NCBI GenBank assembly: GCA_009103225.1
Contig: RHPI01002368.1
Location: 74,841-138,840, forward strand
Direction: 5' to 3'
DNA length: 64,000 nt
Origin: Chlorokybus atmophyticus
Lineage: Eukaryota; Plantae; Mesostigma and Chlorokybus algae
Shown here in pieces: positions 8,505-31,134 of the stretch (positions are counted from its first letter, which is position 1; each line of letters opens with the position of its first letter). The notes below the pieces were generated by a model. It made no database searches. It was not told the DNA's origin and saw nothing but the letters and a program-made list of their open reading frames with translations. The position numbers and the translations under genes are program-made.

Positions 8505-8736
8505 ACTTGAGCTAGGTTGTTTCGGGATATAATTACATGCAGGGCAATAACAGACTGTGGGCTGGTTGTAGTCATTAGGTAGTTAGATATGCTTGTAGAA
8601 GCATACTCGGACAATAAGATCTGTTGGGTTTAATGATGGGAAGGTAGATGAGGACCTTATTGAGTGAGAGGAAGTTTCTTTGGTGAGTTACAGCAAGTGT
8701 AATCGGATCAGCGTAACCCAGATCTGATGGGTGTAA
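8505..8736 (+). repeat. Left part of an approx. 750 bp repeat split by the large transposon; continues at 31135-31650
   Basis: 8505-8736 joined to 31138-31650 aligns along its length with the uninterrupted copy at about 31779-32520. Confidence 0.9.
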
Positions 8737-9420
8737 CATTGGTAATTCTGGACCCCCCGAATTTCTGAAAAATCAGCGCATTTGCCCTGAATACTCATCT
8801 GTTTTATGTGTGAACTCGCCACTTTGCGTGGCTGCAGAGGTCGCTGTTACGATTGCTGATTATTCAGGCCAAATGCCCTGAATACAAGCAATGAATATTC
8901 ACACGTTTTGGTCATGAATAATTGTAGTTGTCCATCTCGCACACAACCTCCTACATGTGAGTAGTTATTCACTCGCAACAGAACTGCATATTCAGTCTTC
9001 TTAGGTATACATGGTCCTAGACTTGTACCATGGTACCAAGTGATTATTCATACTTTGTGTGCGTAAATATTTACAGCGCCTGCCCTCACACTAGGTCCTC
9101 CTTATAGGTAATTATTCACACGCATATTGGCTTAATGTTCACACATACTAAAGCTGTTTCAACAGCACATGTACCATACTAGCGAGTGATTATTCATACG
9201 ATTTGTGATTGAATAATACAGCATATTTGCTCTCACACATAGTCCTATACATGAGTGGTTATTCACCCATCGTATGGTTGAACACTGCTGCCTTTGGTTG
9301 ATTTTTCACGCGAATTATAATTGAATAATACAGCACTTCTGCTCACACACACAGTCCTACATATAAGTGGTTATTCACTCACAGTTTGGTTGAATAATCA
9401 CTGAATCTTGCTATCGTCAA
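8737..9420. repeat. Left TIR and subterminal repeat field (RANTATTCA-like motif in both orientations)
   Basis: Repeated gaatattcac, gttattcac, gattattca and gaataat in an AT-richer tract. Confidence 0.85.
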
Positions 9421-9780
9421 CAGCTGTGACATAGCATAGCTGTGACATAGCACATAGCAATCAGTCCAGCCGGTGAATTTGGACAGCAATGTCAGCTGAA
9501 TGGCAGCTGACTCGAACAACAAATTCACTGATGTCTACAATGTATCTCTGCTACCTACTTCTTGCTGCCTCGACCACGCCCACCGCGCCCACCCCGCCCA
9601 CCCCGGCTGCCCTTCCCACGGCCCCTCCCGCGCTGTGTGGTTGTGCCTTCCTTTGCTGGCTCCCTCACCTTGATACTCTTCAGCAACCCAACAGGCCAAA
9701 GTAGCAACAAACCGGGCTCGCACTCTGCGCATACATCAACCACACATGAACTCAGCTGACTTGCACAATGTTGAAACTGT

Positions 9781-12700
9781 TCATGCAATCGCATGCACAC
9801 AAACGCGTTCACCTTTCAAGTGGGTCACTTGCACTCCAACCCCATCACGCTTGAAGCTGATTGGCAGAGGCACAACCTCTTCTTCCCCTGGTCCGGGACG
9901 TCTGGTCCTAGTGATGGGAAGACTGCGGCTGAACTGGACCACCATGTTGCCCTCTCCAATCTTCTTGCCATGAAACTTGTTGACAGGATTGATGTCGCTT
10001 ACGTGCGCCTCCCCTACTGGTTCTTTGCGCCCGTTAATGAACAGTTGGACTTCACTGCCAACCTTCATCGTCGGTGCGGTGTCGTCCTTGTCGCTCAGCT
10101 CTTCCTGCGCATGCAAGTGACAAACACATCAAGAGGTACACACATACACAGATGTGATCTCTCATACAGCGCTTGCGAAGCGACCTGCCTTCTGCGAGTC
10201 GTTGTCGCTGTTGTTGGGGCTGTCCCCCTCGCTGTCCGGGGCGCTGTCCTTGGCGCCATCTTCACCGCTGTTCTCGCTTCAATCTGTCTCAGGCATTTCT
10301 GAATACGTTAGCTCATCCTGCGCGACAAGGTGACACGACGTGTTAACAAGCTTACAACCGTCACGCAACGAATGCGTGCCTGCCGCAGGTGACAGTTTGT
10401 GTGCAGCCAGAAGAACGCAAGAAGCCCATAAGATCAAGTACATGGTGCTTTCATACCTCCTTTTGCTTGCCGCTCTTCTTCTCCAACACCGTCTCCTGCT
10501 TGCCAGTCGAGTGGCCTGCCTCCTGAGACTTGTAGGGAGCCGGTATCGAGCGAACAGTTTTGTTTGTTTTCTTTTTGGGGGGGCTTGACACCTCATCCTC
10601 CTGCCAACAGCATGAAGTCAGATGGTGAGCCACAACTCAGTGCATTGCCGCTCTATCAGGTCCAATGCTGCGTACCTCACCAGCGACAGTACTCGTAGCA
10701 AATCCGGCCTTTATCGGCCAGCTTGGTGACCTTGCGACGATCACGGGCATGATGCTTCCCACGCCAATGTAGGACCTTCAGTGCCTGCATAGTTTACATT
10801 GGTGCACTAGTACAACATGGGACGAAACAGACTTCGGCAGCAAGGTCTGACATTGATTGCAGATGCTTGATGCATAAGCTCACTTTTAAAGAGACCATTG
10901 CTGTGGTCTCAAGGTCACGCAAGTGAACGGTCGCCTCACTGGTGTCCCACTCATGCTGCAGCTGCTCATCAGAAGAACCACCAGCATTCTTCCCCCATAT
11001 CTCTTCGTCCAAATTCTCCCATCCTTCGCTGCAGTTGCTGGACCGCCCACCCGACGCGGTGCCTGACATGATGATGCCCTCCTGTAGATATATCAAGCTT
11101 GCTTTACAAGTTAGTTGCAACCGCAACCCTAATCTACCTCAAGTCTTGGTTGACTCAAGTGACTGCAGGTTGTAAGCCATGTGGACTTGCTTGTTGACTT
11201 GTCACAGCAAGCAAACCATGTACCTTGCAAAAGAAGTGTCTCTAAGCTGCTTGCACAAAGGCGTGCTTGTGAACTTGTCAAACAGGCACCCAGCAAACCA
11301 AACACCCAGTACCTTGTAGAGTAGAAGCTTCTTCAGCTTCTTTCCAGCTAAACACGAGAAAGGTAAGCCTAACAGCAAGCTAGCAGGCAAATGGCATGTG
11401 CATGCACAACATGTGCTTGTGAACTTGTCAAACAGGCACCCAGCAAGCCAAACACCCAGTACCTTGTAGAGTAGAAGCTGCTTCAGCTTCTTGCCAGCTG
11501 AACACGACAAAGGTAAGCCTAACAGCAAGCTAGCAGGCAAATGGCAGTCCAAAATGCTAGCGGCACAACACCATGCTGTATTTGCTAATTGCAACGAAGT
11601 GACAACGCAACCACTAGAAAAGCAGTGCGACAAGACAGCTGACAACGCTCGCTCACCTCGCCACAGCACCGCCGCCGCCAACACAACCAGCAAGTACGCC
11701 GGTGCTGTGGGACAATCAGTGCAATTCCCGGTGCGGAAACCCTTGCAATCAATGGAATGCAGTGATCGTTCGGAAAATTCACATCAGCAATTGTGCTGGT
11801 CGGACACCAGTCGCGTCTCCGCTTGCTCCGACTGCAATAGGCCGCACGAGCAATTGCCGTGGAAATTGCCTTTTGTCGAAACTTTGATTGCCAAATGAAC
11901 TCTATGTTTATTGGTCGATACAAACCAAGCGAAATTACATTCTCTATTTCCGATGAAATCGTCCATGTCCGAGGACGGTGTCTGTGTGGCTTACCCCAAA
12001 CTATAAGTAACCCTAACCCAAACATCCAATGCATGCTGGTAATTGTGCTGCAACAATGGACCCCCCTGTACCCATGCGCACCATGAATGAGGCTCTAACG
12101 CAGGCGCTCCTCGCAGTCGGGCGGCGATTAGTGGGACTAGGTCAGGTCTTGACACAACCGTGGAACGGCTATGTGGACTCTGGCGATGCTCGCTATCATC
12201 AGGTATCTTTCTCGCTATTCATGGTGTGAGTTGCGTGCGCTATGTCACTCTGCATGCTGCTGACTATGCATGCCACTATGCATGTGCCATACTGTTGCGC
12301 ATTGTTTGTACATGCGTATGCCTTGTGTGCGATTTGGGTTGAGTTTGCCTGTGTAGTGTGCATATGTTTGTCCTGCTATGATAGGAACGCCTATATATAT
12401 GCACAGCTCTGATTGCTACCATGCAACACCCTTGCGCGTTACATGCCGTGCATGTCATGCCATGCTACTGCCTGAATGCGTGTCCAGTTCATGTCCATAA
12501 CAATAGAGGCGCTGCCTATGCATTTGCATCAACTTCTGGCGCACGTTTATGAATGAATGCGATGCAACATGCGATTTAACCTGTAAACTTGTTTGGCAGG
12601 TCCAATTATGCAATTGAGAGCTTTCAACTCGTGGAATTGTTCATCAGGCACCCATTGCGATTGCAGCTACTATACAAACCGGTGTGTATGTGGCAGTCTC

Positions 12701-12960
12701 CGTGCATGAGAACACTCCCTCGCCTCCTGATGCGCCTCTTCCTGCTCGCACTATCATTGACTCGGGCACCTATGGCGCTGCTGGCCTGCGCGTTGTCATC
12801 GAGTGCGACAACAATATTGCTGCACGCTGGAGTGTGTTTACTGGCTCTGAAGTCCCTGCACCTGGTGCAACGCCCGGTACCAGTCTCACACCAACTTGTA
12901 ATGGAATTTTCCCCACTCGCGACCCTCCTAGTGAACCTAGTGACTCTAGTGACTCGTCGC
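9781..12960 (-). pseudogene. Degenerate TnpA-like accessory gene of the CACTA element (Transposase_23/DUF8039-like C-terminus); 5' extent uncertain, probably reaches about 15100
   Basis: Last exon KVGSEVQLFINGRKEPVGEAHVSDINPVNKFHGKKIGEGNMVVQF...VPLPI resembles the V.G.V...P...HG..LG motif of En/Spm TnpA C-terminal domains. Upstream exons are full of TAA/TAG/TGA. Confidence 0.5.
11262..11547. repeat. Tandem direct duplication of about 135 bp
   Basis: gtgcttgtgaacttgtcaaacaggcacccagc...gcaggcaaatggca occurs at about 11262 and about 11412. Confidence 0.92.
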
Positions 12961-13954
12961 AATGACCATTGCTCTACACACACTTTGTTTGCCCTTTACA
13001 CTCTGGTTACCGCTGAGCTGCTCTGCTGGTAATTCTCCAAGTGTGGCTGTTGCATGTGCAATTACTGATAACAGTGGGGTGTGTGCCTTTGTGCAACTTG
13101 GAGATCTAGCAGCAGATCAGCTCAGGCACAACCGCCACAATTGTGTTCACAACAACATAGTGACTAGCAGATTAGTTACATTACAACTATACTACACAAC
13201 AACTACCAAACTACCACCAAACTATACAACTACACAACAACAACAACTACACAACAACTATACAACTACCAAACTACCACCAAACTATAGGCCTTGTGCA
13301 AGGATGACGCAAAGATCTGACCTTGTACTTTGTATTACCTCATGGCCGTAGCACAGCCTGCAAGGCAAAGCGGGTTGCGCTCAAAACTGTTGGACACAAA
13401 TCAGGCATGCAAGCGCCTAACACTGGCAGTAGAATTGCCCAAACATGCTGTTGGAAAACCCCCTCACAACTGCACTCACATATGCACAAATACAAGGTAT
13501 GTTTGCGCAGCAGAAGAAGTGAACACGGACTTTTGCGACACACACGCGCATACACACACATGAGAGCTTACAATCAACTGCCCCAGCTGACTGGACACCA
13601 TACACACACATGCACATTCATGTGATACGCATGCAAGGATGCATTTATCTGTCCCTGCCGTTGCTAGAGCTCTTGCCAACTTCTTGGGCACCGTGACTGG
13701 CGGTGTCCTGCAAACATGCTGCAGGCAATGCTCAACCTGTTGATAGCAGCTGTAAGAATGCCAAGACACCCAAAACACAGAGCCAAATACTCTGACCTGA
13801 GTCTCATCCACAAACACACCATGCCTGGCATGCGAGCTCTGGTTTACCTGCTGTCTTGGAAGCAGCCGGCTGGATCATCATACCCTCTGTTGATGCATGC
13901 AAGCATCTGAGTCAACCAAATACCTACCTCATGTTCGACGAGATCAACTACACT

Positions 13955-14470
13955 GGACCTAAAGCGACCGGCCATCGCTGAATGGTAGCTGTTTACCTGT
14001 GGATCACACACCGTAGTTAACCAGCAGTAGAGTCAGACATAGAGCAGGGAAATAACTTTTGAGAGACACAATGCTAGCGCAAGCACACACAGAAAGAACA
14101 CCCTTTTGCCGCAAGGCCACTGAGGGGTTATGCCCAAGGCTGCCCCAGCGGCTTGCAGCAAACACCTTTTGTGCCGCAGCACCGGTAAGGCCACTGAGGG
14201 GTTATGCACAAGGCTGCCCCAGCGGCTTGCAGCAAACACCTTTTTGCTGCAGCACAGGCAAGGCCATTGAGGGGTTATGCACAAGGCTGCCCCAGCGGCT
14301 TGCAGCAAACACCTTTTTGCCGCAGCACAGGCAAGGCCACTGAGGGGTTATGCCCAAGGCTGCCCCAGCGGCTTGCAGCAAACAACTTTTGTGCCGCAGC
14401 ACAGGTAAGGCCACTGAGGGGTTATGCACAAGGCTGCCCCAGCGGCTTGCAGCAAACACAGCACGCACAG

Positions 14471-14512
<42 letters not shown>

Positions 14513-15100
14513 CATGGCATGCGCAAGGAAGCACGGCATGCACGTATCTGCTGTGTAGCCGCTAGCGCTTCAGCATCGCCGCCGCCGCCGCCGCCGACGA
14601 TGACCTTGCCTGCGCCGGCGCCGCCGCCGCCGACCTTGACTAAAATCTGCATGCGAAATGGCTGCTGTAACTTCAAAACCCTAAGTCCATGACCTAAGTC
14701 CATGGACCTAAAGCGACCGGCCATCGCTGAATGGTAGCTGTTTACCTGTAGATCACACACCGTAGTTAACCAACAGTAGAGTCAGAAATGGAGCAGGGAA
14801 ATGACTCTTGAAAGACACAATGCTAGCGCAAGCACACACAGAAAGAACACCTTTTTGCCGCAAGGCCACTGAGGGGTTATGCACAAGGCTGCCCCAGCGG
14901 CTTGCAGCGAACACAGCACGCACAGCACGCACACACACACACACGCATGCATGGAATGCGCAAGGAAGCACGGCATGCACGTATATGCTGTGTAGCCGCT
15001 AGCGCTCCAGCATCGCCGCCGCCGACGACGACGACGATGACCTTGCATGCGCCGGCGCCGCCGCCGCCGACCTTGACCAAAATCTGCATGCGACGTATCT
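13955..15100. repeat. Tandem segmental duplication containing an approx. 73 bp minisatellite (5 units at 14090-14455, 1 unit near 14864)
   Basis: ggacctaaagcgaccggccatcgctgaatgg at about 13955 and about 14705; unit ccactgaggggttatgcacaaggctgccccagcggcttgcagcaaacac recurs every 73-74 bp. Confidence 0.92.
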
Positions 15101-15223
15101 GCCTGAGATTCTTGCTAGGAGCTCAAAATCGCTGGCGCCGTCGCCACCGACCTCAAAGACTTCGCCGCCAACCACGGCAACCTCGCCGCCTCCCGGCCAC
15201 AACCTACAACAACATGTCCGGGC

Positions 15224-15886
15224 GGTTAGGGTTAGGGTTATGACATATGGCGAAACAGAGTCACAAAAACATTCACCCAGTCCACACCACAGGGCCGGTC
15301 TGAGGTCTTACAGACCGCCCCAGCTCCTCACCAACACATTCACACAAAAACAAAACCACAAGGCAGGACACTGAGGTCTTACAGACCGCCCCAGCGACTC
15401 ACCAGCACACATGCACAGAAACACAAAATTAAGGCAGGTCACTGAGGTCTTACAGACCGCCCCAGTGAATCACCAACAAAATCACAGAAACAAAACCACA
15501 AGGCAGGTCACTGAGGGCTTACATGCCGCCCCAGTGAATCACCAACACATGCACATAACGGAAACCACAAGGCAGGACACTGAGGGCTTACATGCCGCCC
15601 CAGTGAATGACCAGCACACATACACACATGCACGCGCACAAACAAAACATGCAGGCAGGCAGGCTTGCACGTATCTGCCTAAGTAGCTCTGCATCAACCA
15701 AGGATGGCTGCCGCCGTCGCCGCCAACCTCAAGGACCTCGCCGCCGACCACGCCGCCCACAACCTTTATAACTAAAGACGCTGCCGCGGCCGACTCAGAC
15801 AACCTCGCCGCCGACCACAACAACCTCCCCGCCACCAACCTTGCAAACTACAACAACTTACAAAAACGTTAGGGTTAGGGTTAGGG
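15224..15886. promoter_or_regulatory. Putative bidirectional promoter region with short TTAGGG tracts (15224-15240, 15869-15886) bracketing an approx. 70 bp minisatellite (15290-15610)
   Basis: GGTTAGGGTTAGGGTTA and (TTAGGG)3; five units of cactgaggtcttacagaccgccccag; lies between divergent element genes. Confidence 0.55.
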
Positions 15887-16489: not shown

Positions 16490-19400
16490 ATGTCCAAGCG
16501 AAATCTCGTTCCCCTTGGCCAGTTTAAGCCTGCAGGTAATAAGTAATATATGCTTGTTCAGCATGAGTATCGTTAACATGTGGTAACACTGGTCATGCAC
16601 ACAGACAAGAAGCACAAGGGTCCAGCGCACAAGAAGGAACCTGCTAAGAAGGAAGCTGTCCTGCAGAAACCCTGCAAGAAATCAAGTAATGTAGCGCTGT
16701 TCCAGCTGACCATACTAACGCATGCTCACTGCGGTTGTTTGCCACCATTGTTGCAATAACACTGTCTATTGCAGACCTTTTTGACACCACAAAGGCTCAG
16801 TTGTTGGAGGGGTTCAATAATTGGCGGAAACTAAGGGAGGAGGAGAAGGCTGGGAAGGCGAAAATGTCCACAAAATACAGTTGGGATGTCGTGGTTGAAG
16901 TAATGCAGAAGAACCTGAATGAAGATCCTCGCTTGATTGAGCTCGACAAGAACTTGCAGATCTGCCTATGGAAGTTCGTGGAGGACCAGCTCAGGCTTTG
17001 TGATCCGGAGGCAGCTGCTAGGGGTATGGACCTCGGGCATTTTGGCCTTGAAGATGTTGTTACCGATAATGACATCCATGAAGAAACGAAGACAAAGTGG
17101 GGAAAGAAATTCTCTGACTGGAGGAAAGCGAAGGCGAAGAGCAAGAACCTCATGTCATGGGGTGAGCTGGTGGTCTTTATCAAGAAAGCGCTGTGCAAAC
17201 CAGACTTGGCTTCCCTCAATCGAGAATGGAGGCTCAAGCTACGGCAGTATGTGGAGGAAGAGCTAAGGCTATGTGATCCAGAGGCAGCTGCTATGGGCAT
17301 CGACATCGGGGAATACGGTCTTGACTACGAAACAGAGGCGCTCAAGCAGCAAGTGGAGGCCCAAGCCAAGCAGCAAGCGGATGCTGAGTCCAAGCAGCAA
17401 GCGGATGCTGAGGCCAAGCAGCAAGCTGACGCGGAGGCCCAGCAGAAAGCTGAGGCCCCATCCAAGTCCCAGACTGCACAAATGCAGAAAGGGCCTCGAC
17501 CTGAAGCCGGTACCTCTGCTTCTGCTGTTGAACCAGAAGACGGTCTACCTCCAGCAGAAACGGAGGGCAGGGTTAGAGCTGGTTGGGCTGTTGCATGATA
17601 AACACCGGCTTCGGCTTTTCGATGCCTATGCAGATTGGAATTGCTTCTATGCCTGCCTTGCCCAATCGCGCCCTCGCGTGAACGCTGCGTGCTTGACACG
17701 CGCGAACGCAGCGGACAACGGGTCTTTCTGGCGAAGCATTGTGCTGGACAATGGCAAACAGCTGCCAACAAGAGAGCAAGCGCAAAAGCTTCGGAAGATC
17801 TGTGCTGAGCAGGTCAACCTTTATTGGTTGCTGGAGTATCGCAATTACGGGGCCTGTGGTGACATGGGCCAGGATTACAAAAAGATGGCCAGGAAATATG
17901 GCGTAACCAGGGCACTTAACAAAAAGCAACTCAAGCCTAAGCAAGATGAAGACAACGCTATAGAGGCTCTGCAGAAAGTGATCGCTGAAGAGAGCGTTTA
18001 TGCCGATCAACTGCAAGTGGCGATCATGGCGCACGCTCTTGGCATTCACATCGATATTGTGCAGCTCACTGAGGTTGCCGACGAGAAGCAGTACTGCTGA
18101 GAAGCAGAGCATAAGGGCGGCCTCATTGAAGGCGATGACGGGAGGTACTACACAGTGGATGCCAAGGGAGAGAAGCATTCCGTCAAACCTGTAGTGGTGG
18201 TTGGCGAGGATGTTATCGATGTGGCTAGCCATATAATCATTGGCAACACGGATCCAAGCAAGCCCAGCGCGCATTACATGTCTGTTGGTGATGCAAATGG
18301 TATACTCTCTTGGCAGCGCAGCGACATGCCACCGAAAGTCCTGCGCTGCATGTACCCTGCAGATGCCGAGCCCCAGCCCCAGCCCCAGCCCCAGCCCCAG
18401 CCCCAGCAGCAAGCCCAGCCCCAGCCCGAGCCGAGGCCCAGCCCCAGCCCAAGCAGCAAGCCGAGCCCCAGCCCAAGCAGCAAGCTGATGCCGAGGCCAA
18501 GCAGGAGGCCAAGCAGCAGGCCAAGCAGCGGGAGGAGGCGGAGGCCAAGACCAAGCTGGATGAGGACAATGCCAAGCAGCGGCAGGAGGAGGCCGAGGCC
18601 AAGCAGAGGCAGGAGGCGGAAGCCAAGGCCAAGCTGGGTGAGGCCAATGCCAAGGCCAAGCAGAGGTTGGAGGCCGAGGCCAAGCAGCAGCAGGAGGAGG
18701 CCAAGGCCAAGCAGGATGAGGCCAATGCTAAGGCCAAGCAGGAGGAGGCCGAGGCCAAGCAGAGGCAGGAGGCGGAGGCTAAGGCCAACGAGGCTAAAGA
18801 CCAGCAAAGGCAGGAGGCTGAGGCCAGGAGCCAGCAGGAGGCTGGCGCTATGCAGGTTGATGCCGCTGTTGAGGAGGAGGCTGATGCTATCAGTGATATG
18901 TCAGTTGACATCAGCACCGCAGCAACCAGTGACACCAGTGACATCAAGAAACGCAGACGCCGCCCGTCACGCCGCCAGCGAGCTGCTTTGCAAAGGGACA
19001 ACACGCCTTCCGGTGCTTTCCAGAAGCTGCATTGTGTGCAACAGGGGGAGCGCACCGTGGACGAATATCACGCGCAGTTTGCACAATTGTGCGGGGTGGC
19101 AAACACCTGCGTTGAGCTGGTGCCTAAGGCCCTTAAACTACAACTGTTTCTCCAGGGACTCAGGAAAGTAGTGCGCATTGGCGTGCCCAAGGGTCCTTGC
19201 AACCAAGATTGGAATGCTGATCAGTTCGATTTGCTTGTGTCGGCTGCCAAGACTTATGAACGGACCTTGCTTGTTAAACAGCAAGCACACCTCTTAGATC
19301 GTTCAAAGTTTGAGTTCGGCAAAGCAAGGCCAAGCAGGTTGCAGAAATTGGAACGACTGGAACAAATCAGCAGTCGTCGGGAGGGCAAGAAGCTGGCACA

Positions 19401-19608: not shown

Positions 19609-20733
19609 ATGTAACAGCAACCTCGAGGTTGTTCACTTCACGACTACCAGCTTTGCAGGTTGGAACACGCATGGACACTGCTTGTACAATAGCAAAAGTT
19701 GCAAGTATTGCTCTCGTTAACATCTGCTGCTGTTGTGTTTGCAGGAGCCTCTGCTACCTCACCATGCCTGTGCAGAATCTATCGTTCTCACAGCGTAGGG
19801 CCAACCTCATGTGTAAATGTATATATTAATTCAAGCTGAACACAGAGGCATCTTCTAGATTTAGCCCTCTGTTTTCTCATTCTCGATTCGGGTCTGAGCT
19901 CATGCTGAATGCAGAGGCATCCTCGTGAATAAGCCCTCTGCTTGCTCATTCTGTCTTTGTATGCAGAGCGTAGGAGCATCACCCTGTGATTAAGCCCCCT
20001 TCTTGCTCACTTTCTTGCCCCCTTCTTGCCTGTGCCACCTGCTTTCGCTGCTAACCAGCAGGAAGTGGAGGTGTTCTTCCAGGTGACATGACAGGAGCTT
20101 GACATGACAGGTTAGAGGAAAGACAATCTCGTGGTCTTTGTACAGGATAAAGTGTGTTAGCTTTAGCTGCCTGTCTGTGTGTGTTGAAGGATTGCAGCAA
20201 AATGCAATCACCCACATCTGCCTGTCCTTGTATGCTTAAAATCATCCCGACTGCACGCGGGTTCACTGCGAACGCACCGCCTTAGGAGCCTTGCTGGCTG
20301 CTGTTTGTATGCAGTCACGGCGCACAGGTAAGTGTGACAGCACTTGTAGAGTGGAGGTGGTAACAGAAGTCAGCAGTAAGTCATGAGGTATGCATCGCTC
20401 TCGTGCATATACTACCTATGATTGCATTTCACCTTCTCAACCACCTCCAGCCTCTGCATGGAACTTGTTGGTCGCGATCTGCTCCAGGGCTTTTTGATGG
20501 ACGGCGGTTGTACCTGCCGCTGGGGTTGGGTTGCTGTTTGTGATATGGCAACTCAGGCTGGCAGTCCTTCTCCCCCCACCCACCTGAGAGAACACCTCTT
20601 GCTGCTGTTGACATGCCGCCCTCGTATTGGCACGCCCTCGTACTCGCCCCGACAACCGCTGAAAACCGGGCATGTGTCCAAAGATTGCACGCAACCACAG
20701 GCATGCGCACAGCAACCTAGAAGTTCTCCTTCT

Positions 20734-20940
20734 CCGCCCACCCACCTGACACAAAACCTCCTGCGGGTTTACTGCGAACGCAGGATGTGGTCCTGCAGAG
20801 CCGTCTCGCGCAAGTCACGTACTGTAGACTTTGTGCACATGCTCAGAGCCTCTGGTTCATGACTTTCGCGAGTCAGCTTTGGTTGGACCATACCCTGCGT
20901 TCGCAGTGAACCCGCAGAAGGTCTGGTCTCGGGTGGGCGG
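20734..20940. repeat. Imperfect inverted repeat (arms about 57-60 bp, spacer about 90 bp) between convergent element genes
   Basis: cctcctgcgggtttactgcgaacgcaggatgtggtcc versus reverse complement of ggaccataccctgcgttcgcagtgaacccgcagaagg. Confidence 0.85.
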
Positions 20941-21128
20941 ACGGCGCAACAGGGCTTGAAGGCGCTCTGGAAGAGACCCTGCCCAGCAGGTCAGTCTTTC
21001 CCGTGCTGGCAAACACAGGCATCCTCATGATTAAGACCTCTTGCTGACTTTATTGGGTCGCTCATTCTGTTGTTGAGTTTGAGTTCAGGCTAACAAAGTG
21101 GCCAGCAATCAAGAGCTACCTCTACCTT

Positions 21129-22874
21129 TCAGTAAAAAGGAGGGTAATCAACAGTGAAGCCTATTGCTTCCAGCAACAGCCTGCCTACATGTTCAGAGTA
21201 AGTTGGTGGAATGGCATTCTTGACTTCCGATTCCGCATCCATCCACTCCACCTGCATGGCAGACTGCCACCCTGCAATCGTGCCACGGCAGGATGCTTGG
21301 CCGTACACCGGGTAAATTTGCCTCTCCCCAGGTAGCAACTGCCGGCGCTGCTCCGGGTGGGTGGCCAGCTCTCCAAGTGCACAACTTGTGTGGTTGCATT
21401 TCAAGTCTCAGTGCAGTGGAGGGTTTGTCTCGAAGATGCGATGACGATACACATCCAACTTGAACATGGTGCCACACAGCTTCAGGTGAGTTGTCAGGTG
21501 TCCTGATGCGCCTGCGACATTCTCTATCACCCATGGCTTGCCGCTCAACTGCAACTTGGCTCTTATGGGGTCAATCAGGTTGACGTGCTCCCATCGATTG
21601 CCGTACGCGGAGCGCTGTGTAGTGGGAATGGCCCCACTTAGAGCTTGACATGGAGGACTTGCCCACACCGCAGCGTATGCTGTCGGGTCAGCGTCCATTG
21701 CATCCATCTGGCAGAACTTGAATGGGTATGACGGTTGTGGCTTGTCGATGCCCTCAACATCAAACCCTGCGCTGTACAGACCCATGGCTACACCACCAGC
21801 GCCGCAAAAGAGATCCAGTGCGCGCGGCCTGCAACGTCTTCCGATTGAGTCTATTGGTGTGCGTGTGATCAGAAGGGGTGGGGGCTTGGGCCATCGATCG
21901 AGCTCTCGACCAGGCAAGTCTTGCAGTTTCAGACAGCTTTGACCACCAACACGAACCATTACGTCGTAACCCTCACGCACAGCTGCCATGTTCCAGTTCT
22001 TTATCAAGATGTGGTGCAGCCGTGGGTCCTCAACGAAATCGTCGTACTTGATGGTATGTTTTCCTGAGCCACATGTTTGCCTGAGCCGGTGCTTGCATGA
22101 GCGTGCGCATGTAAATACTCTGCAGTATACCTGTGTTGGCATCAAAAGTGATGATGTGGCCTGCATACCAGGAGCTCATTCCTGGCCAGTACACCACAAC
22201 GCGGCATGCTACCAAAGACTGCCCCTCATCAACAATCTCCTTCCGCCAAGCAGCCAGTGTCGCGACATCATCGACAACCGCATTCCCCTTTGGCATTCAA
22301 GAGTAAGTTGGTCATGCATGCAAGCGCTGTTTTGCTGTTTGCAAGGACAGTTCAACTCAACAACCGCCAAGCAGCCAGTGTCGCGACATCGTCGACAACC
22401 GCGTTCCCCTTTGGCATTCAAGAGTAAGTTGGTCATGCATGCAAGCGCTGTTTTGCTGTTTGCAAGGACAGTTCAACTCACCCTGTTGTTGACATCGTCT
22501 TCGATTACAGTGGACTTGCCGCGACCGTTGCGCACGAGCTGACGTCGAACCACATTGCACATCTGCCCATCGTGATATGCTCCAGGTCGTGCCCAAGGCA
22601 GGTAATTCATGGGCTCGCCGTCCCACTCAAACTTGGAAAGCGAGCACTGCAGGCAAGTGCACTCCTCCCAAAAGAAATCTGGCCTCATGCATTGTGCCAG
22701 CAGTCTGCATTGCCTCACATTGTCCCCCCTTGCCTTGTGGTGCCAGCAGGCTTCATAGAAGCCATACTGCTCACTGTACAGCTTGCACTTCTCTTCATGC
22801 TGTTGCAGACGTCTGTTGTTGCCATTCCTAACCAAGTATGCTTTGCAGAAGCTACACACTTTGACGCCGCGCAT
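21129..22874 (-). pseudogene. Cys/His-rich + Tudor-like + C5 cytosine DNA methyltransferase fusion gene; one in-frame TGA in this copy
   Basis: Motif I LDLFCGAGG, IV ASPPCQ, VI VIENV, VIII YRHRIFE, terminal AMQVEWM..EVKNAIPPTYSEHVG. Tudor-like LVACRVVVYWPGMSSWYAGHIITFDANTG/KHTIKYDD joined across a phase-1 GT-AG intron (about 22130-22064). TGA at 21408-21410 continues in the same frame into ORF 21129-21404. Confidence 0.9.
22243..22480. repeat. Tandem duplication of about 120 bp (intron plus exon start) inside the methyltransferase gene
   Basis: ccgccaagcagccagtgtcgcgacatc...gttcaactca occurs twice; the duplicated donor is broken (ttgagt), so splicing from the first donor to the second acceptor keeps the frame. 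Confidence 0.88.
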
Positions 22875-23164
22875 GCTGGCGCCACGCTACCTGGCACACA
22901 AACCCTAGAAGCTAATGCACTGGACGGAAGAAGAAAAGGAGCATGTACGCAAATTGTGGAGCATATCCGGATTGACTTTCTGGCTTGTTTTGAATCGGGA
23001 TTGGATGTGTCCTAAACCCTTAATTTACAGTAGGCAGTCATGACGGTGGCGACGGCGGCGGTGTTTGCGGCGGCAGCGTGCCTGCAGGTCTTTGCTTTGG
23101 CTGTATGGAAGTTGATTGGAAGTTGCTTGCAGTATGTTGGCTGACTGCTTTTGATGTTTGTAGC
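22875..23164. promoter_or_regulatory. Short (about 290 bp) putative bidirectional promoter shared by the methyltransferase and transposase genes
   Basis: Head-to-head ATGs at 22874 (-) and 23165 (+); telo-box-like AAACCCTA/AAACCCT at about 22902 and about 23014. Confidence 0.55.
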
Positions 23165-26100
23165 ATGAGCTACTTTCGCAGGTGTTTTTGCCGCGACTGC
23201 AAAGGGAGCAAAGTGTTCACACACAACCACATTAGAAGGGCTGAATATCATGAAAACTTTGGCAAAAACATGTGGTGTGGCACTCCAGAAGCTGTTGCTC
23301 CTGAATACCGTGATCGACTACAACCCCATGAACTTGAAGAAGCTGATGCTGCTGTTGCTGCTGCATCCTTACACATGTCGTCAGGTACGAGAGAAACTTC
23401 TCTACAGCTTTGAATCTATACAACAGGCTGTCTGATCATTGATCTGGCTTGCCCCAGGTGAAGCTCTCCATGACACCGAACAATTGCTAGTTGGGAACGA
23501 CGCTACTGAACATGTTGACACAGGCACGCCGTTGCAACCGAGTGTTGAATCTCCTTTCAATGTTGCAGCCAACTTGCAACCAGCAGGTACGACCTGACTT
23601 GCGTGGCATGTTGACATTGCTGATGCTGTGCCTCTCATTGTTCATGTGCCACTAGACTCATTGCAGCTGGCAGGTTGTGATCCGTGTGCTCATGAAGGAC
23701 AATGTGCTTATGGAGAACAACGCGGATCTCACCCAGCATTTTGTGGAATTGAGAATGCTACATTGCAAGAGCATCAAGGTGCCAGAACCAAATCCACAAA
23801 TGGACAAGTAGAGCCTGAGACGCCAGTGCACTGCACCTCCACTGCTGAGCAAGTCGATGCGGAGCAAGGTGATGCGGAGCAAGGTGATGTTGCCGGCGAA
23901 GACCAAGACTATGAAACCGATGTGGAATCGCAGCCGGACGAGGCTAAATGCGTTGATGATGCCATGCTACTTGACAAGGTGAATGCTGCGTTGCTGGATA
24001 ATNAGCAACCCTGGTGATGCGGATCAAGGTGATGTTGCCGGCGAAGACCAAGACTATGAAACCGACCGTGGAATCGCAGCCGGACGAGGCTAAATGCGTT
24101 GATGATGCCATGCTACTTGACAAGGTGAATGCTGCATTGCTGGATAATGCAAGCAACCCTGTTGTTTTCAGCTCTCGTACAACCCCTCTAGGCATTTCCA
24201 TGCTGCTATTGGTTCTGGCGCAGCTACATCGAATACCCTTCAATTGCATGAATCAACTGCTCAGGTTGGTGGGCAGATTACACAGCTGACTGCTGAAACA
24301 TCAGCCTGTTCAGAACTGATGTGTTTCTGTGTGCCAGGTTGTTGCGTGGCATCCTCTTGCCTAAGGAGAATAAGATGCCAGGCAGCATGCACGAGCTATT
24401 GAAATGCCTTGAAGGCCTCAACATGGGCTTCCACACATATGATGCCTGTCGCTGTGATCACATGTTGTATTGTGGCCGACATGCCAACATGATACTTTGC
24501 AAAGGTGAGCAATTGTTGCAAATGTTCACTACAATGGGATTTAATTAGCATGTCCCATCAGCATACGACTTGCTTATGCAGTCTGCAAGGCCCCTCGCTA
24601 CCGCAACATAGGAGGTAGACAAGTTGCATGGAAGATTGGGCGTTACTTTGACGTGCCTGCTGCGCTGAGGGCTCTGTACCTAAAACCTAGTGTTGCTGCG
24701 GAGATGATGGCGCACACAAATCGAAGTCAGGATGGGATTATGCGATCTATACACGGTAACATTGCCAAGTTCAGTGGTATATGAGGCACGACTGTGTGCA
24801 TGATTGTGTTGGTAAGCGGCTGGGGCAGTCCAATGCAAGCCCTCAGTGTCCGTGCCTTGTGCTTTTGTGTGCGTGGCGCTGAGGCAGCATGTAAGACCTC
24901 GGTGTCCTTGCCTGTGTTTGTTTGTGTGTCGGCGTGGCGCTGAGGCGGCATGTAAGACCTCGGTGTCCTTGCCTGTGTTTGTTTGTGTGTCGGCGAGGTG
25001 CTGGGGCGGTATGTAAGACCTCAGTATCCAGCCTTGCGATTGTATGCATGTTTGAATGTGTTGTGGGGCTGGGGCAGTTGGTCGTAAGCCCTTGGTGTAC
25101 TTGCTGCTGTCAGACTCGCCAATGTTCAAGGACACTGAACAACGCTACAGCCGATTTGCCAAAGAACCACGCAATGTGCGCCTAGCGATGTTCATCGACG
25201 GGATGAGCCCGTTCAAAGATCCGCACAAAGGTATAAAAGAGCATTTTTCTTCCTGTATGCTCGTTGCAGTGTAACTGTACGAATGGCAGCTAAGGGTTTG
25301 TTGAGTTGCAAGGGACTATGAGTTTTGGGTTGTCACAATCTCAGTGTTGAACCTGCCCATTGCCAAGATGCACAAGACAGACACTACATTTCTAGCTGCT
25401 GTAATTCCTGGACCCAAACAGCCAGAGAATCTACAGGCTTATCTCAAGCCAATTATTGACCAGTTGGGAGATCTCTGGGAAGGTATGGTTTCAACGCAGC
25501 TAGGATAAGCAGCTTCCATTACTGCAGTCATGCCTGACAAATGCGCACGACTAAGGCATGTAATCTGCTGGCATTTGTTATAGGTATAGACATATATGAC
25601 AGCCACCGCGACGCAGTTTTTCGTTGCAGATCTATTCTGCAGATTGTAATCCATGATTACCCAGGTACTCAAGCAGCAGCAGTGTTTGCACTTACTGTTA
25701 CCAGTGTCTGACTGTATCTGTATATTGGACTGTCTTTGCAACCATGGTTGTGGCTACTGAAGTACATTTTGTTGGTTGCGCAGCTCTGGCAAATTCTGCC
25801 TTGCAGATGGCGCATGGAGCCATCTTTGGCTGTTCAAAGTGCGAGTGCAGTGGAGAACATGTGGAACTTCTCAAAAAGGTGATCTATCAAGGCCACCGCC
25901 GGTACCTACCGGATGACCATCCTTACAGAGTTGATGAGCGTTGGCCGCATCCAGAACACAGACCTCCACCACCCATGCGGACTGCAGAGAGCGTGTACAC
26001 GTGAGCAATCTCAATTGATTGCGCATTCGGTTGCAGAACATAGGTATGTCAGCAATGGATGCCATGTGATCAGGTATGCTATGACATCTCGCAACAGCAA

Positions 26101-29100
26101 GCGTCCACTGCACTCCAAGAGACATCCTTCAAAGACCTCCGGCATCCTTGGACTGAGCTGTTTTCACGACCTTCCATATTGGCTACCGTTACAAAAATCT
26201 GTCAAAGGTCATGTGGTTGGCCCTATGCACATTTTTGCCAACCTGGCAACCAACTTTGCAAATCTCCTAGCTGGCTTGCGCGACAGCATCGAATCACGAG
26301 AAAATCTGCAGCAGCAAGGCCGCATGCCTGCACTCTGGCTAGAGGTACGTATGTAGTCCGCCTCGTTGACATGTGCCATAGTTGGATTTAACTAAGGACT
26401 TGAACCTATGTGCTGCAGACAGAGATGAAGATGAAGGATGGAAAGGAAGTCGCAGTCAAGGTAAAACCCCAGGCTCCATGGACAATCACAGATGTAGGAC
26501 TGGTTGAGCAATTGCTCTCCGGCGTGAGGGTTTCAAGCACTTTCGGCTCGAAACTGCAGTCTTTCACAAAGCATTTAGGTGAGATAGCCGTTATATGTTT
26601 TGTGTTTACGCTAAAGCAATGATTCTCCATGCATGGACAACTTTTGACATGGAGCATGCAGGCTCGATGAAATCGCACGACAAGCACAACTTATGGTCGG
26701 TCGTTTTTCAGTACGTGCTGCGCTCTGCACACGACATTGGAGAAGATCAGAAGAGAACCATCTTCAAACTATGCGACATCTATCAACGGCTGACTGCATT
26801 GGAAGTAAAGCAGTCACACCTCGAAGAATTGAAGGTTGGCTTTAATAACACTTTACTCTGCATGCCCAGCTCATATGGCATGCATAGCTTATTACTTAGT
26901 GCAGGTGCTAGTGCATGAGGCACAGTCTGAAGTGGAGCTGTTCTTCCCGCGAACTTCTTTCACAATGATGCTGCACCTCCTTGGCCATCTACCAGAGCAG
27001 TGCATGTGGCTTGGTCCGACGCGTGACCACTGGGAGTGGGCACATGAACGCTTTATGCAGTGGGTGAAGCGCATGATATTTGCAAGGCAGCATGTGGAAG
27101 CAAGCATCTGCAAAAGGCAAGTTTTGTGTGAGCCCACTGAGAGTTACGTGCAAACTTTCCACATTGTTTGCCTTGTTCAAGTGCCAGTTGCATCTGCAGA
27201 TACTCTATCCAGCTCATGCTGAACACTTACATGGACACCTTGAAGCGACTTTTCTCCGACATCAGTTTGCGATCGGGCAAGCAACGAGATGATGACGACT
27301 ATGTGCTCTGCGGACGGAGACACCGTATTGAGGTTGGGGATAAAGATAGTAAGACAAGGCAGGAGCTCGAGTGGTGGTTGGCTGAGAATGACGATGAATA
27401 CAGGCTGTTAAAAGAGTAAGTTGCTTTGGGAGTTGCTGTTTTGTACGTGATGTCCAACGCGCAGACAGTATGATTTATTTATGGGTTGCTGCTACACAGA
27501 GAGTTCAGTCGGGAGGTGAACAAACGCAGGATGGCAAGGGAAAGGGCTCAAAAACAAGGACATGTCGTGGCAAAGGACATGGAGCATATGACTGAGCTGC
27601 ATCACTGGCGTGGACCTGCTAGGGAGCTTACAAAGCACGAGATGGAGCTGTTGAGCGGTCCAATCTTTCCAAAGTACATCAAGCGATACTTCAGAGCACG
27701 CTACAAGGACATCGGTCAGTTCAGAGCAGAGGAAATGGAGAAGAAACTCCGCACCATGGACTGTGGCGTGTTTACCGTTGGGCGTGACTCAGATGACCCA
27801 ACCAAGAAGATCCATTGGTATGGCAGGGTGCAATCTTTTGATGTTGTGGTGATAGCTGGTCGGGAGCACCAGCTGCTCAGAGCTAGGTGGTACATGAGCA
27901 ACCAAGTCCAGCACAGTGGAGGATTTGCAATCCTAAGAAAAGACAAGCCCCGCTTTGCAGAACAAACCTACCTTGATTGCAACCTGGTAAGTGGCTGTGT
28001 TGCAATCGTTTTGGCGTGTGCTTGGTGTGATGATAGTAAATTGAAATAGTAGTTTGAAAATGGCTGATGAATATTTTTTTCCTTCTTGCTGGCAGGTCAA
28101 GGGCCAGTGGTTTGAGGGAATTGATCCCCATGACAACAAAGTAACAGTAGTGCTTGTTAAAGACATGCGCAGTCTCATGCGTCGAGGCATGCACCGGGAC
28201 ACTCCGGTAAGAGGAGAGTTAACAACGTTGTCCATTAGAATCTGGATGTCCTCATATATCCTGGGTTTTTGCATCACATACAGCCATCTTGTGTAATTGG
28301 TGCAGGGTGCCCAAAGCGAAACCAATAGCGCCTCGAGCGAGGTGTCATGGACCACACGCCGCGACTGGCATTTTGAGTACAAGAGGTACTGTTTGCGATT
28401 GTGATGCCTCATATCCCTACTGTGAGACTGTAGACCTGGCCACTGAACCTTTGTTCACAGGATGAGACCGAGACTGGAGCTGGATGCGTTGGAACATCGG
28501 GAACATGAAGACTACTGCTTTGTCTGCAAGGATGGGGGCACCATATCTGGCTGCGATGTGGAAGGTTGCTGGAAAAGCTACCACGCGCACTGTGTCTCTA
28601 TGCCACCTGTGGAGGATGAATATTGGGAGTGCCCAAGGCATGAGTAAGTGGACTTCATTGCAGCAAATGCTTGGCATCTTGTTGTGAGGAACTTCACTCC
28701 TAGAACCATCATCACTTGTACTGAACCAAAACACAGGTGCCATGTGAGGAACTGCAACGAAGCAGCTTTTCAAGTCTGCGAGACGTGTCCAAACAGCCTC
28801 TGTCAACGGCACGCTGTGGGTAGCATGGTTGAGGTTACGTGCTCGCGATGCACTGCGTACGAAGAAGGTGGTGCTCCAGCGCAGCTCCCAAGGGAGAGCC
28901 TTGCTCGTCGTTCTCTGCCGGGCAATTGCGGTAGGGTTTCACAACCTGTGCAGAGTGGGGTTCAACACGTTGAAGAGAGTGGGGATGAGGCTAACAATGG
29001 TAAGCTGCTGTGTGCTTGAGCTTGTTGATTTGCGTTGTGGTTCTTGCCCAATTGAACCATTTATGGCTGCAGAGGCAGTCACGATGGAAGTTGACGAAGA

Positions 29101-30336
29101 AGACAAAGAGGGCTGTAATCAGCAACCCACGACGGCTGCGGCAATTGTGGACCTCGTGGGCAGCGATGATGATATCATGGTGCTGGACGATCCAGTCAGC
29201 AACCCGCAGCCGTCAACACCGCAGCCACTGTTCATTTACCCTAGTGCAAGTGCACGTGATGCGGTGCCAGTGCTTGAAACGGACAGGAGGTTGCTGGATG
29301 GCAGACAAGAGCTCAATGACACCATCCTCCACTTCTTTTGCAGGTATGTGATTTGTTGCGTCTGTGTTATTCGTGTATCTCATATGTACGTGGGATGCAC
29401 ATGCAGATACAAGGAAGAGGAAATCTTAGGCAGAGCAGATGGCATTCAGGTGAAGCTGTTCCACCCGCATTTCTACACCAAGATCGTGCGCTGCCATAGA
29501 CAAAATGACTGGCACACGAGCAATCACAGGATAGACAGGTGGGAGAGTGATCCGTTTGCCAAGGACTTGCTGGGAGTGATTGTCAACCCAGACACGCGGT
29601 GAGAATAAGCGCCAAGAATATCTTGCTGAATTGCTGCTGTATTTGCAAACTGGAATTATTTTGATTGTTCACAGGACTCACTGGAGTCTGCTGCTTGTGT
29701 GCAATCCTGGAGGCCAACTTGGAAGTGACACGCCGCCTTTACTCGTCCATCTCGACTCCCTTGGCCTGCATCGCAACGTTGATGGACCTATGCGCGCTTA
29801 CCTTGACTACATGTGGGGCAGAAAGCATGGAAGTGACTCACAACAACGGTTCTCTCCCGAAAACGTACAGCTTCTTGTACCACAGGTAGCACACGTTGCA
29901 TTGCACTAGTGATGAGTTTGCATGCATTCTGTCACAAGCACTGATTCAATGCATGCACATGCATTTGGTTTGCAAGCATTGACACATGTTTGTGCAGGTC
30001 CCTCAGCAGAAGGATGGAGTTGCGTGCGGGTTGTTTGTCATGCTTTATCTTGACAAGTTTATAGATGGGGTACAAGCTGGTCCAATTGACCCAAACGCAC
30101 GGATATTTCAACAGGTACAGTTCATGCATGTGCACTGCAATGTTTACAAGTGGAAGGTGCTTCAATGGCACTGTCGTGTAGGCCGACACGTGCTTAGTAA
30201 CCACATGTTATTGCTGTGTGGTTGTGTGCAGATGCAAAGGAGTTGGTTTCATCCTCAAGTGGCAGACAGGTTGAGAAGACGATTGCGAACACTCATGAAC
30301 AGTATGTTAGCGCAGCAAAGACATGAGTTGAGCTAG
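23165..30336 (+). CDS. Multi-exon CACTA transposase (Transposase-associated Zn domain, Transposase_21, DUF4218, DUF4216-like) predicted to be fused to PHD-C5HCH and Ulp1/C48 SUMO protease
   Basis: CFCRDC..H; TYDACRCDHMLY; FAKEPRNVRLAMFIDGMSPF; VIPGPKQPENLQAYLKPIIDQLGDLW; VIHDYPG; YQGHRRYLPDDHPYR; GSMKSHDKH; FFPRTSFTMMLHLLGHL..WEWAHERFM; WYGRVQSF..LLRARWY; CFVCKDGG..C..C..YHAHC..WECPRH-C..C..C..CP..LC..H; ELNDTILHFF, HWSLLLV, LDSL, PQQKDGVACG. Splice phases checked from 27987 to 30336 are compatible. The D.MH motif reads GPMH (26219-26221). Confidence 0.9.
23865..24160. repeat. Near-identical tandem copy of about 140 bp with an N at the junction; likely assembly overlap
   Basis: gcaaggtgatgttgccggcgaagaccaagac...ttgctggataat twice, N at 24003. 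Confidence 0.7.
24810..25095 (-). repeat. About 61 bp minisatellite in a transposase intron, inverted relative to the related 15290-15610 array
   Basis: Reverse complement unit gacaccgaggtcttacatgccgcctcagcg matches gacactgaggtcttacagaccgccccagcg. Confidence 0.88.
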
Positions 30337-30529
30337 TAGTAGCAGGTGGTGTGTAGCATAGCAATGCTGTAGTCCATATCAGAGCTGTCCCCCACCATCA
30401 ACTCAAACCAGCTGTGTAGAATTGCTGAGCAACTCTGGCTTTGACATATACTAGACTGTATATTAGAATTAGCAGTGCAATCTACTTGGTTTTCAATCAC
30501 ATTCGGGACTTGGCCAAAATGAGAGTATA

Positions 30530-31134
30530 TGTTTATTCGTGTGGGGTTGAATATTCACTCACAGCTAGGAGTTACTGCACAACGTATTGCTTGGTTTTGG
30601 AATGGTGTTGAAAATTCACTCAAAGCTAGGACTTAGTGTGAATCGTATTGCGTAGTTTTAGATGGGTGTTGAATGTTCACTCACATCTGTGGCATGAAAC
30701 TGATGAAGGTTATGAATATACATGTGTGACAAGCTGATCAATTGATTATTCACGGGCAGTTGGGACTTGGTGAGTTTAAGCTGTCTGTTATAGCCACAAG
30801 CTTATGCCCCTTCATGAATGTTCAGGCAATGTGTAGCTGAATATTTAGCAGAGCACATGCTGTGTCCATTCACAATTGCATGCCCTTGAACATTCAATCG
30901 GTTTCAACTGAATATACGAGGTATATGGGTTTTGAAAGGTGGCATTGATTTATCGTGTGGATATTCACGCGATTTATAGGTGAATGTCGCGATTTCGTTT
31001 TGGCAGGGATTGCACAAAATGTACGAAAACACTTGAATATTCACTCGATAAAAAGCTGAGACGGTAAATCCAACGATTATTCAGTGCGTTTGCCATGAAT
31101 TTTCAAAAATTCGGGGGTCTCATAATTACCGGTG
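30530..31134. repeat. Right subterminal repeat field and TIR
   Basis: Repeated gaatattcac/gattattcac motifs ending in AATTACCGGTG. Confidence 0.87.

Follow-up and report, generated by a model that had tools for sequence, protein, structure and literature searches.

A 22.4-kb CACTA-type insertion in Chlorokybus atmophyticus holding an interrupted, putatively giant-virus-type DNA methyltransferase gene

Transposons which carry enzymes of the DNA methylation pathway are rare, and they bear on the way in which genomes and their elements negotiate silencing. Three cases are known. C5 cytosine DNA methyltransferases (DNMTs) are encoded by LINE, DIRS and Copia retrotransposons of Symbiodinium and Klebsormidium, for which the deposition of 5-methylcytosine (5mC) has been argued (de Mendoza et al. 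2018, PMC5890265). TET/JBP genes occur in fungal EnSpm, Plavaka, KDZ, hAT, Harbinger and Helitron elements (Kojima 2025, PMC12730594). Lastly Mariner-1_OLpv, which is borne by an Ostreococcus virus, encodes a C5 methyltransferase and an EcoRII-like endonuclease (Bao and Jurka 2013, PMC3627910). Other chromatin-related domains have also been met in transposon proteins: Ginger1 transposases are fused to Ulp1 (with a PHD finger) or to OTU, Ulp1 is present in Mutator elements and OTU in Helitrons, and for these proteins an action on SUMO or ubiquitin was proposed, either in the course of transposition or to counter silencing (Bao et al. 2010, PMC2836005), while fusions of PHD and Chromo domains with transposon proteins are found across eukaryotes (bioRxiv 10.1101/2021.11.30.470311). 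Here we analyse a stretch of 64,000 nucleotides from Chlorokybus atmophyticus (assembly GCA_009103225.1, contig RHPI01002368.1, positions 74,841 to 138,840 of the forward strand), called hereafter the window, of which positions 8737-31134 are occupied by an element with the anatomy of an EnSpm/CACTA transposon and with four genes, which we name A, B, C and D. Gene C is a DNMT gene.

We favour the following reading, to which we give a probability of roughly 55%: a single EnSpm/CACTA element was inserted at a TAA together with a transposase-PHD-C5HCH-C48 gene and three further genes, including a Tudor-like/DNMT gene carried from a giant-virus source, and the present copy is decaying. A cellular CACTA element with a spliced DNMT gene of giant-virus type and a reader-like domain would be a fourth case beside the three described above, and a single locus would link a giant virus, a transposon and the host methylation system. 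When full-text literature was searched for transposons encoding a DNMT, the sole paper returned was that of 2018 on retrotransposons (PMC5890265), and in our literature searches we found no published spliced C5-DNMT gene inside a cellular cut-and-paste element. This combination of cargo in a cellular CACTA element appears to be new. An initial annotation of this DNA had described the combination as unfamiliar in cut-and-paste elements; we indeed found no report of the same combination, but each type of cargo taken separately has a precedent in transposons (PMC3627910, PMC2836005, PMC12730594). Since the evidence consists of one broken copy, its value is that of a lead and not of a demonstrated system.

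With the DNMT retrotransposons (PMC5890265), the locus has in common that a transposable element holds a C5 methyltransferase whose catalytic motifs are conserved. Those elements are retroelements in which the DNMT lies in ORF1 or Pol and is sometimes derived from DNMT3, whereas here a cut-and-paste transposon, bounded by terminal inverted repeats (TIRs) and by a target-site duplication (TSD), holds a separate, spliced and broken gene of probable giant-virus type. Mariner-1_OLpv is likewise a cut-and-paste element which encodes a C5 DNA methylase and is linked to algal giant viruses; it differs in that it resides in a viral genome, belongs to another superfamily and has a restriction-modification-like module with neither introns nor Tudor or PHD domains. 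With the EnSpm/CACTA (CMC) elements, including those carrying TET/JBP genes, the likeness extends to a DDE transposase of the Transposase_21 type, a 3-bp TSD, CA..TG termini and subterminal repeats, and the TET/JBP carriers also have a 5mC-pathway enzyme encoded by a separate gene of a cut-and-paste element. Their enzyme is an eraser of 5mC and their hosts are fungi, whereas we deal with a predicted writer of 5mC (C5-DNMT) in an alga. Relative to the EnSpm/CACTA norm, our element is unusually large (22.4 kb), has three extra genes and ends in CATTG/CACCG rather than in CACTA. Finally, Ginger1, KI-MULEs and animal Helitrons resemble it by a C-terminal Ulp1 on the transposase (with a PHD finger in Ginger1-9_HM) and by OTU domains in element proteins. 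They belong to other superfamilies, whereas here the PHD finger is of the NSD PHD-C5HCH type, and the OTU-like region is marginal and placed in a separate gene.

The limits of the element were established by comparing the window with itself. The left flank (8488-8736) matches positions 31763-32012 and the right flank (31132-31662) matches positions 32007-32527, both at 84-85% identity. The host sequence is thus a tandem duplication (units of about 780 bp, 84-85% identity), one unit of which is interrupted by the element; an open reading frame (ORF) piece of this host sequence, at 31886-32245, translates as SVGFNDGKVDEEVIEWGEVHLASYNQCNR... The other unit, at 31763-32527 on the forward strand, is an uninterrupted paralogous copy of the insertion site, the empty site being at about 32007-32012. 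The empty site reads gatgtgtgTAAtcggggc and the filled site gatgggtgTAA[8737...31134]TAAtcggggc; a single TAA in the former stands for the two TSD copies of the latter, at 8734-8736 and at 31135-31137. This shows that the 22,398-bp unit 8737-31134 is a clean insertion with a 3-bp TAA duplication. As the second host unit is uninterrupted, the whole 22.4 kb came in as an insertion.

The ends of the unit agree with this. A repeat search of the window gave inverted-repeat arms at 8736-8806 and 31065-31135 (71 nt, 73% complementary). The left TIR (8737-8806, forward strand) begins with CATTGGTAATTCTGGACCCCCCGAATTTCTGAAAA, the right one (31065-31134) terminates in ...AATTACCGGTG, and when the tips are aligned directly, 31 of the first 39 bases are identical (CATTGGTAATTCTGGACCCCCCGAATTTCTGAAAA against CACCGGTAATTATGAGACCCCCGAATTTTTGAAAA). 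The tip pentamers are CATTG... and ...CGGTG (CACCG on the other strand), which agrees with CA..TG but differs from the canonical CACTA pentamer. Motif counts delimit a subterminal repeat zone on each side, at 8737-9500 on the left, where TGAATA(A/T)T motifs accompany a 112-bp tandem unit (9187-9394), and at 30500-31134 on the right, TIR included. All 10 occurrences of the 8-mer TGAATAAT fall in the terminal 1.8 kb, the body of 20.6 kb having none, and TGAATA/TATTCA reaches 7-8 hits per 500 bp at the ends, against 0.41 expected, with 8+8 motif hits per 500 bp counted in the left zone. TIRs, 3-bp TSD, CA..TG tips and subterminal arrays together are the anatomy of EnSpm/CACTA elements. The boundaries 8737 and 31134 given by the initial annotation are therefore borne out, the TIRs being imperfect and the TAA duplication being proved by the empty-site paralogue; its picture of a CACTA-type unit bounded by TIRs and a TSD is largely right, with transposase, PHD-C5HCH, C48-like protease and C5-DNMT gene all inside.

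Gene C runs on the reverse strand from 21132 to about 23317. Here and for the other genes, domains were searched on stop-free ORF pieces and the gene models were deduced by hand from the DNA. For the DNMT domain itself (21132-21863), motifs I (DLFCGAGG), IV (SPPCQ), VI (ENV) and VIII (RHRIFE) are held by an exon of 255 codons; it is followed in frame by 92 codons with the motifs YPVYG, AMQVEWM and NAIPPTYSEHVG and a TVDYPPFY end. Motifs I, IV, VI, VIII and X (NAIPP) follow each other in the order seen in aligned homologues. On the single DNMT exon, Pfam PF00145 scores 19.7 bits, under the cut-off of 22, and an exhaustive phmmer search found 3470 homologues, the best with E=3e-50. Hence the C5 methyltransferase which had been announced from the translation is confirmed by the phmmer matches and by the order of the motifs, even though the single-exon Pfam score is below threshold.

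The reading frame is interrupted after motif VIII by an in-frame TGA (21408-21410). We considered that this TGA might be intronic and rejected it: no GT occurs from the RHRIFE codons to the stop, and both flanks are collinear with the homologues. Around the stop the window reads FETNPPLH*DLKCNH, where P0008 has FETNVPITVDLKCNH (TVDLKCNH) and P0167 has FESNLPLTATRCCNH. If the assembly is taken at face value, the TGA is a nonsense mutation. Compared with P0041, 73 of 157 positions (46%) are conserved before the stop and 32 of 67 (48%) after it. This equal conservation on both sides, with 92 downstream codons still open, indicates a recent lesion, in a gene which was probably constrained until not long before it.

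The sequence N-terminal to the DNMT domain (21985-22218, reverse strand) is split by a 67-nt intron at 22064-22130 (GTATAC..CAG). Its removal joins ...WYAGHIITFDANT to GKHTIKYDDFVEDPRLHHILIKNW and gives ...WYAGHIITFDANTGKHTIKYDDFVEDPRLHHILIKNW, which reads, marginally, like a Tudor-type barrel. On the first exon only, i.e. on half a domain, Pfam gives Tudor_KDM3B at E=0.062 and LBR_tudor at E=0.12. The Tudor domain proposed previously thus gains from a splice which restores a Tudor-like motif, but the profile scores remain marginal (E=0.06-0.12 on half a domain). Further upstream, ORF pieces at 22243-23317 on the same strand make up the remaining exons of gene C, in which Pfam found no domain. 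A tandem duplication of 121 bp (two copies, 98%, 22243-22480) repeats an intron/exon junction of this gene.

Where does this DNMT come from? The 150 best of the 3470 homologues are mostly short proteins of 145-453 aa, and those examined among them lie on phage-like or giant-virus-like contigs and not in genes of the DNMT1/3/5 type; further hits are located in phage genomes. By its sequence relatives, then, the DNMT of gene C is to be classed as bacterial/giant-virus type and not as DNMT1/3/5. The closest matches, P0167 (59% identity) and P0168, have an MBD-like insert between motifs VIII and IX, and share with the window protein a C-terminus of the form xDYPPxxY. A maximum-likelihood tree built from 98 sequences places the window DNMT in a clade of 9 tips (SH-aLRT 99), the other tips being P0004, P0005, P0008, P0019, P0022, P0041, P0167 and P0168. 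The contigs of five clade members were examined; they are compact and intron-poor, and most of them have giant-virus hallmark genes. Topoisomerase II, mRNA triphosphatase, TBP and kinases are encoded on the contigs of P0168 and of its neighbour P0003, a D5-type primase-helicase on that of P0284, and an mRNA capping enzyme and UCH near P0022, a gene model of an unplaced scaffold of Chromochloris zofingiensis, while the contig of P0004 is a compact gene array without Pfam hits. The placement in this clade leads us to regard the DNMT of the element as one of algal giant-virus type.

The relatives with an MBD insert (P0004, P0005, P0008, P0041, P0167, P0168, P0022 and P0284) resemble the window protein by 46-59% identity, by the order of the motifs and by the xDYPPxxY C-terminus. 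They are encoded in compact gene arrays on giant-virus-like contigs, whereas the window DNMT is in a transposon, has no MBD-like insert, and possesses introns and a Tudor-like N-terminal extension. Relative to the clade, it would therefore have lost the insert and gained spliceosomal introns and the Tudor-like N-terminus. This argues for a long residence within a eukaryotic genome and against a fresh viral fragment. Among the closest relatives, at loci L007, L009 and L012 (metagenome and Logan contigs), the MBD-like part is either an internal insert or a separate gene adjacent to the DNMT, and the DNMTs have topoisomerase II, D5 primase-helicase and mRNA-capping genes beside them. This looks like an uncharacterised giant-virus clade whose DNMT itself bears an MBD-like reader.

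The transposase is encoded by gene D (approximate span 23598-30336, forward strand), which has many short introns and was read from Pfam matches of ORF pieces and from translations as a predicted transposase-PHD-C5HCH-Ulp1 protein. Four exon pieces at 25110-25998 match Transposase_21 (PF02992), the catalytic core of CACTA/EnSpm transposases, at model positions 8-44, 48-109, 104-137 and 134-207 (E=5e-7, 1.6e-10, 4e-3 and 1e-6, respectively). They are followed at 26911-27132 by the transposase-associated domain DUF4218 (E=1.3e-10, 41.5 bits for a cut-off of 27). The transposase of the initial annotation is thus established by four consecutive pieces covering model positions 8-207 and by DUF4218. 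Upstream, the exon pieces at 24002-24781 have no Pfam match; by eye they resemble the stretch which precedes Transposase_21 in plant TNP2-type transposases. If these pieces are N-terminal exons of the transposase, a 61-nt minisatellite at 24833-25029 lies in one of its introns.

The same region contains the only N inside the element (24003), flanked by a tandem duplication of 146 bp (23868-24161, 95% identity). We rejected a genuine frameshift at this place, as the duplication flanks the N and collapsing one copy restores a continuous ORF of 181 codons. The duplication is probably an overlap between contigs left unmerged by scaffolding. Since the collapsed junction restores the ORF, the two sides of N 24003 belong together.

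Downstream, at 28510-28833, gene D encodes an NSD-type PHD finger (PHD_NSD 29.1 bits for a cut-off of 23.9; zf-HC5HC2H 30 bits) followed by a C5HCH finger (26.3 bits, exactly at the cut-off of 26.3). A TAA between the two falls in a 93-nt intron (28644-28736, with consensus GTAAGT...CAG), the removal of which yields WECPRHECHVRNCNEAAFQVCETCPNSLCQRH, i.e. WECPRHECHVRNC...CETCPNSLCQRH, with the junction WECPRHEC...CETCPNSLCQRH. The result is what we take to be the PHD5-C5HCH arrangement of NSD proteins, and the PHD-C5HCH module suggested earlier is upheld by the three profile matches and by the exact splice. An Ulp1/Peptidase_C48-like domain comes last (29270-30078), spread over at least 3-4 exons (HW, DS, Q..C). 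Two of these match consecutive parts of the Peptidase_C48 model, 87-140 and 161-188, and the catalytic H, D, Q and C (HW, DS, Q..DG..CG) can be seen by eye in the translation, which speaks for the Ulp1 protease of the initial annotation; but both exons, at 17.8 and 17.4 bits, remain below the cut-off of 20.7.

The other two genes are less easily read. The four genes follow each other in the order minus, plus, minus, plus, in agreement with the two divergent pairs of the initial annotation. Putative gene A (9558-13874, of uncertain extent, reverse strand) consists of ORF pieces with an RGG-rich C-terminus, and the AlphaFold2 single-sequence model of one piece (9784-10128) has a pLDDT of 38.2. 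The label "TnpA" which it had received came from motif resemblance by eye and is not sustained by Pfam on the pieces tested. Gene B (16690-19605, forward strand) has internal repeats in its N-terminal region, long coiled-coil repeats, an OTU-like region and a stretch that weakly resembles gag. In the OTU-like region (about 17640-18290) a Cys box DWNCFY and a His box SAHY are recognised by eye, but the match to OTU (PF02338) is below threshold (E=0.051, 14.5 bits for a cut-off of 23.3), and an in-frame TGA (18098-18100) stands between the boxes. This TGA could be removed only by weak GT..AG pairs, e.g. by a 54-nt intron at 18091-18144, whose splice signals are poorer than those of the 67-nt and 93-nt introns described above. 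The AlphaFold2 single-sequence model of the OTU piece has a pLDDT of 39.8, and phmmer against the sequences of the PDB found no match for the OTU or DNMT pieces. The gag-like stretch (19015-19164) matches Retrotrans_gag at E=2.5e-4 (21.6 bits for a cut-off of 24.1); it is the sole retroelement-like trace in the ORF pieces of the element that were scanned, in which there is no reverse transcriptase or integrase domain.

Repeats are abundant within the element. A block between genes A and B (13954-15626) contains a 73-bp array (14111-14459) and a 69-bp array (15286-15626). The latter has an inverted counterpart at 24833-25063: both are made of a minisatellite of 61-69 nt, with at most 95 nt at 76% complementarity, and they lie about 9.2 kb apart and bracket about 9.5 kb. 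The first array lies between genes A and B and the second apparently inside a transposase intron. The convergent spacer between genes B and C is occupied by a palindromic unit of 247 bp (20716-20962; arms of 78 nt, 77% complementary, with a 91-nt spacer), which is either a hairpin or akin to miniature inverted-repeat transposable elements (MITEs). At 11263-11546 we noticed a young tandem duplication (150 bp, 1.9 copies, 96%), and short telomere-like tracts are present at 12008-12023 (TAACCCTAACCC) and 15224-15240 (GGTTAGGGTTAGGGTTA), in opposite orientation and about 3.2 kb apart. Comparison of the window with itself revealed no long direct repeats or long terminal repeats (LTRs) inside the element, and no second transposase or internal TSD-bounded unit was found there. 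The observed/expected ratio of CpG is 0.62 in the element and 0.71-0.75 in its flanks, values too similar to show a methylation decay specific to the element.

We looked for other copies. Among 5.8 billion proteins, nothing matched the 255-aa DNMT exon above 59% identity; with the 157-aa transposase exon, no hit was scored inside the limits set on length, and the profile of the DNMT clade returned only environmental proteins. Neither JGI metagenome contigs nor viral contigs contained a match to the TIR pattern, metagenome contigs had none to the DUF4218 exon, and tblastn with 22 exon pieces found nothing elsewhere in the window.

The empty site shows that everything between the TIRs was added to the locus, and as no nested boundary was found, the DNMT gene is most simply read as having travelled with the rest. 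In its simplest reading, we infer, the gene moved with the element at least once. The source of the DNMT would be a giant virus or an endogenised viral fragment, and after its acquisition the gene would have been turned eukaryote-style by gaining introns, losing the MBD insert and acquiring the Tudor-like N-terminus. At the level of the family, the transposase may be tethered to the tails of histone H3 by its PHD-C5HCH module, SUMO or ubiquitin may be stripped by the C48 protease, perhaps also by an OTU protease, either while the element transposes or so as to blunt silencing, and the Tudor-DNMT may deposit 5mC. The in-frame TGAs of the DNMT and of the OTU-like region imply that the present copy belongs to such a family at best as a decaying member, and is not a working, self-contained epigenetic system. 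The initial annotation had proposed a self-contained system by which the element controls its own epigenetic state; for the present copy, the nonsense codon behind motif VIII contradicts this, the OTU and Tudor calls are marginal, and the idea can be kept at best as a hypothesis about the family. The giant-virus affinity of the DNMT is a new point, which that annotation had missed, as it had the two TGAs and the 146-bp duplication at N 24003. We give rather little credence to a bolder version, in which a currently or recently active algal CACTA family, of which this copy is a decaying member, spreads a giant-virus-derived, Tudor-guided C5-DNMT together with transposase-linked PHD-C5HCH and with proteases removing SUMO and ubiquitin, writes 5mC and edits SUMO/ubiquitin to manage its own chromatin or that of its competitors, and offers viral DNMTs a route into eukaryotic genomes. 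If intact copies exist, self- or target methylation and its effect on spread become directly testable.

Several points weigh against the reading that we favour. All the evidence comes from one copy, the protein, profile and DNA-pattern searches having produced no second one. In this copy the DNMT is broken: cut after motif VIII, the predicted protein cannot form a complete enzyme, and the OTU-like region is possibly broken as well. The OTU, Tudor and gag-like calls are under the thresholds of their families, as is C48, and the pieces of gene A which were tested match no Pfam family at E<=1. The gene models are our own manual reconstructions, and the functions of all the products are predicted from sequence. 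Finally, the inverted minisatellite (15286-15626 / 24833-25029) leaves room for a later internal rearrangement or insertion. Part of this would be accounted for by passive capture, a possible explanation which we nevertheless hold to be the less probable one: the DNMT and the OTU/gag-like genes would be transduplicated host or viral passengers, as in Pack-type elements, never useful and now decaying, and only the transposase-PHD-Ulp1 gene would be the element's own. The in-frame TGAs in the DNMT and in the OTU-like region agree with it, as do the mosaic nature of the cargo (low-complexity coiled coil, weak gag-like piece, marginal OTU) and the failure of the protein, profile and DNA-pattern searches to find a second cargo-bearing copy, and it has been argued that TET/JBP genes often pass passively from one transposon lineage to another (Kojima 2025, PMC12730594). 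But passengers of this sort do not account well for a DNMT whose catalytic motifs are all intact bar one stop, whose 92 codons after the stop are open and as conserved as the upstream part, which suggests constraint until recently, and whose gene is no fragment but a complete one, which has introns of its own and to which a reader-like domain was added.

The room left by the minisatellite could also be filled in another way, which we judge improbable: the CACTA element came first, the block of genes B and C entered it later by insertion or recombination, and the DNMT was never mobilised by the CACTA transposase. Inverted arrays of the 61-69-nt minisatellite do bracket the B-C region, the MITE-like palindrome at 20716-20962 lies between the two genes, and there are several recent internal tandem duplications. 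However, the right array is apparently in a transposase intron (the exons on its left being recognised by eye, without Pfam), so that the bracketed block would include a part of the transposase, and we found no TSDs, LTRs or second transposase inside. That the unit is a mere chimera of unrelated contigs joined in scaffolding seems to us extremely improbable. The window does contain 688 N, and N 24003 is flanked by a 146-bp duplication which resembles an unmerged overlap; yet the collapsed junction gives a continuous ORF, there is no other N in 8737-31134, and TIRs, TSD, subterminal repeats and empty-site paralogue concur on both ends.

Outside the element, the window is gene-poor and rich in low-complexity sequence; it gave no hit at all, over its whole length, with Rfam, and Pfam matches outside the element were confined to two pieces, one of a papain-like protease and one of a Copia-type pol. 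The former is an exon of a papain-family cysteine protease (33548-34174, reverse strand; Peptidase_C1, E=2e-5) running into a long (SP)n/polyproline tail. Such a tail, TTAGGG tracts and the algal-virus affinity of the DNMT would suit a green-algal host. A Copia-type pol remnant is recognised by eye at 38872-39261 on the forward strand (...YDNQSAIKLTKHPV...), and one ORF piece of the flanks matches Pol_BBD in Pfam (8e-8). Two inverted pairs, 42885-43651 / 55208-56032 (about 800 bp, 66% identity) and 53905-54008 / 57114-57217 (104 bp, 98%, beside N 57118), are probably other repeat families or assembly joins.

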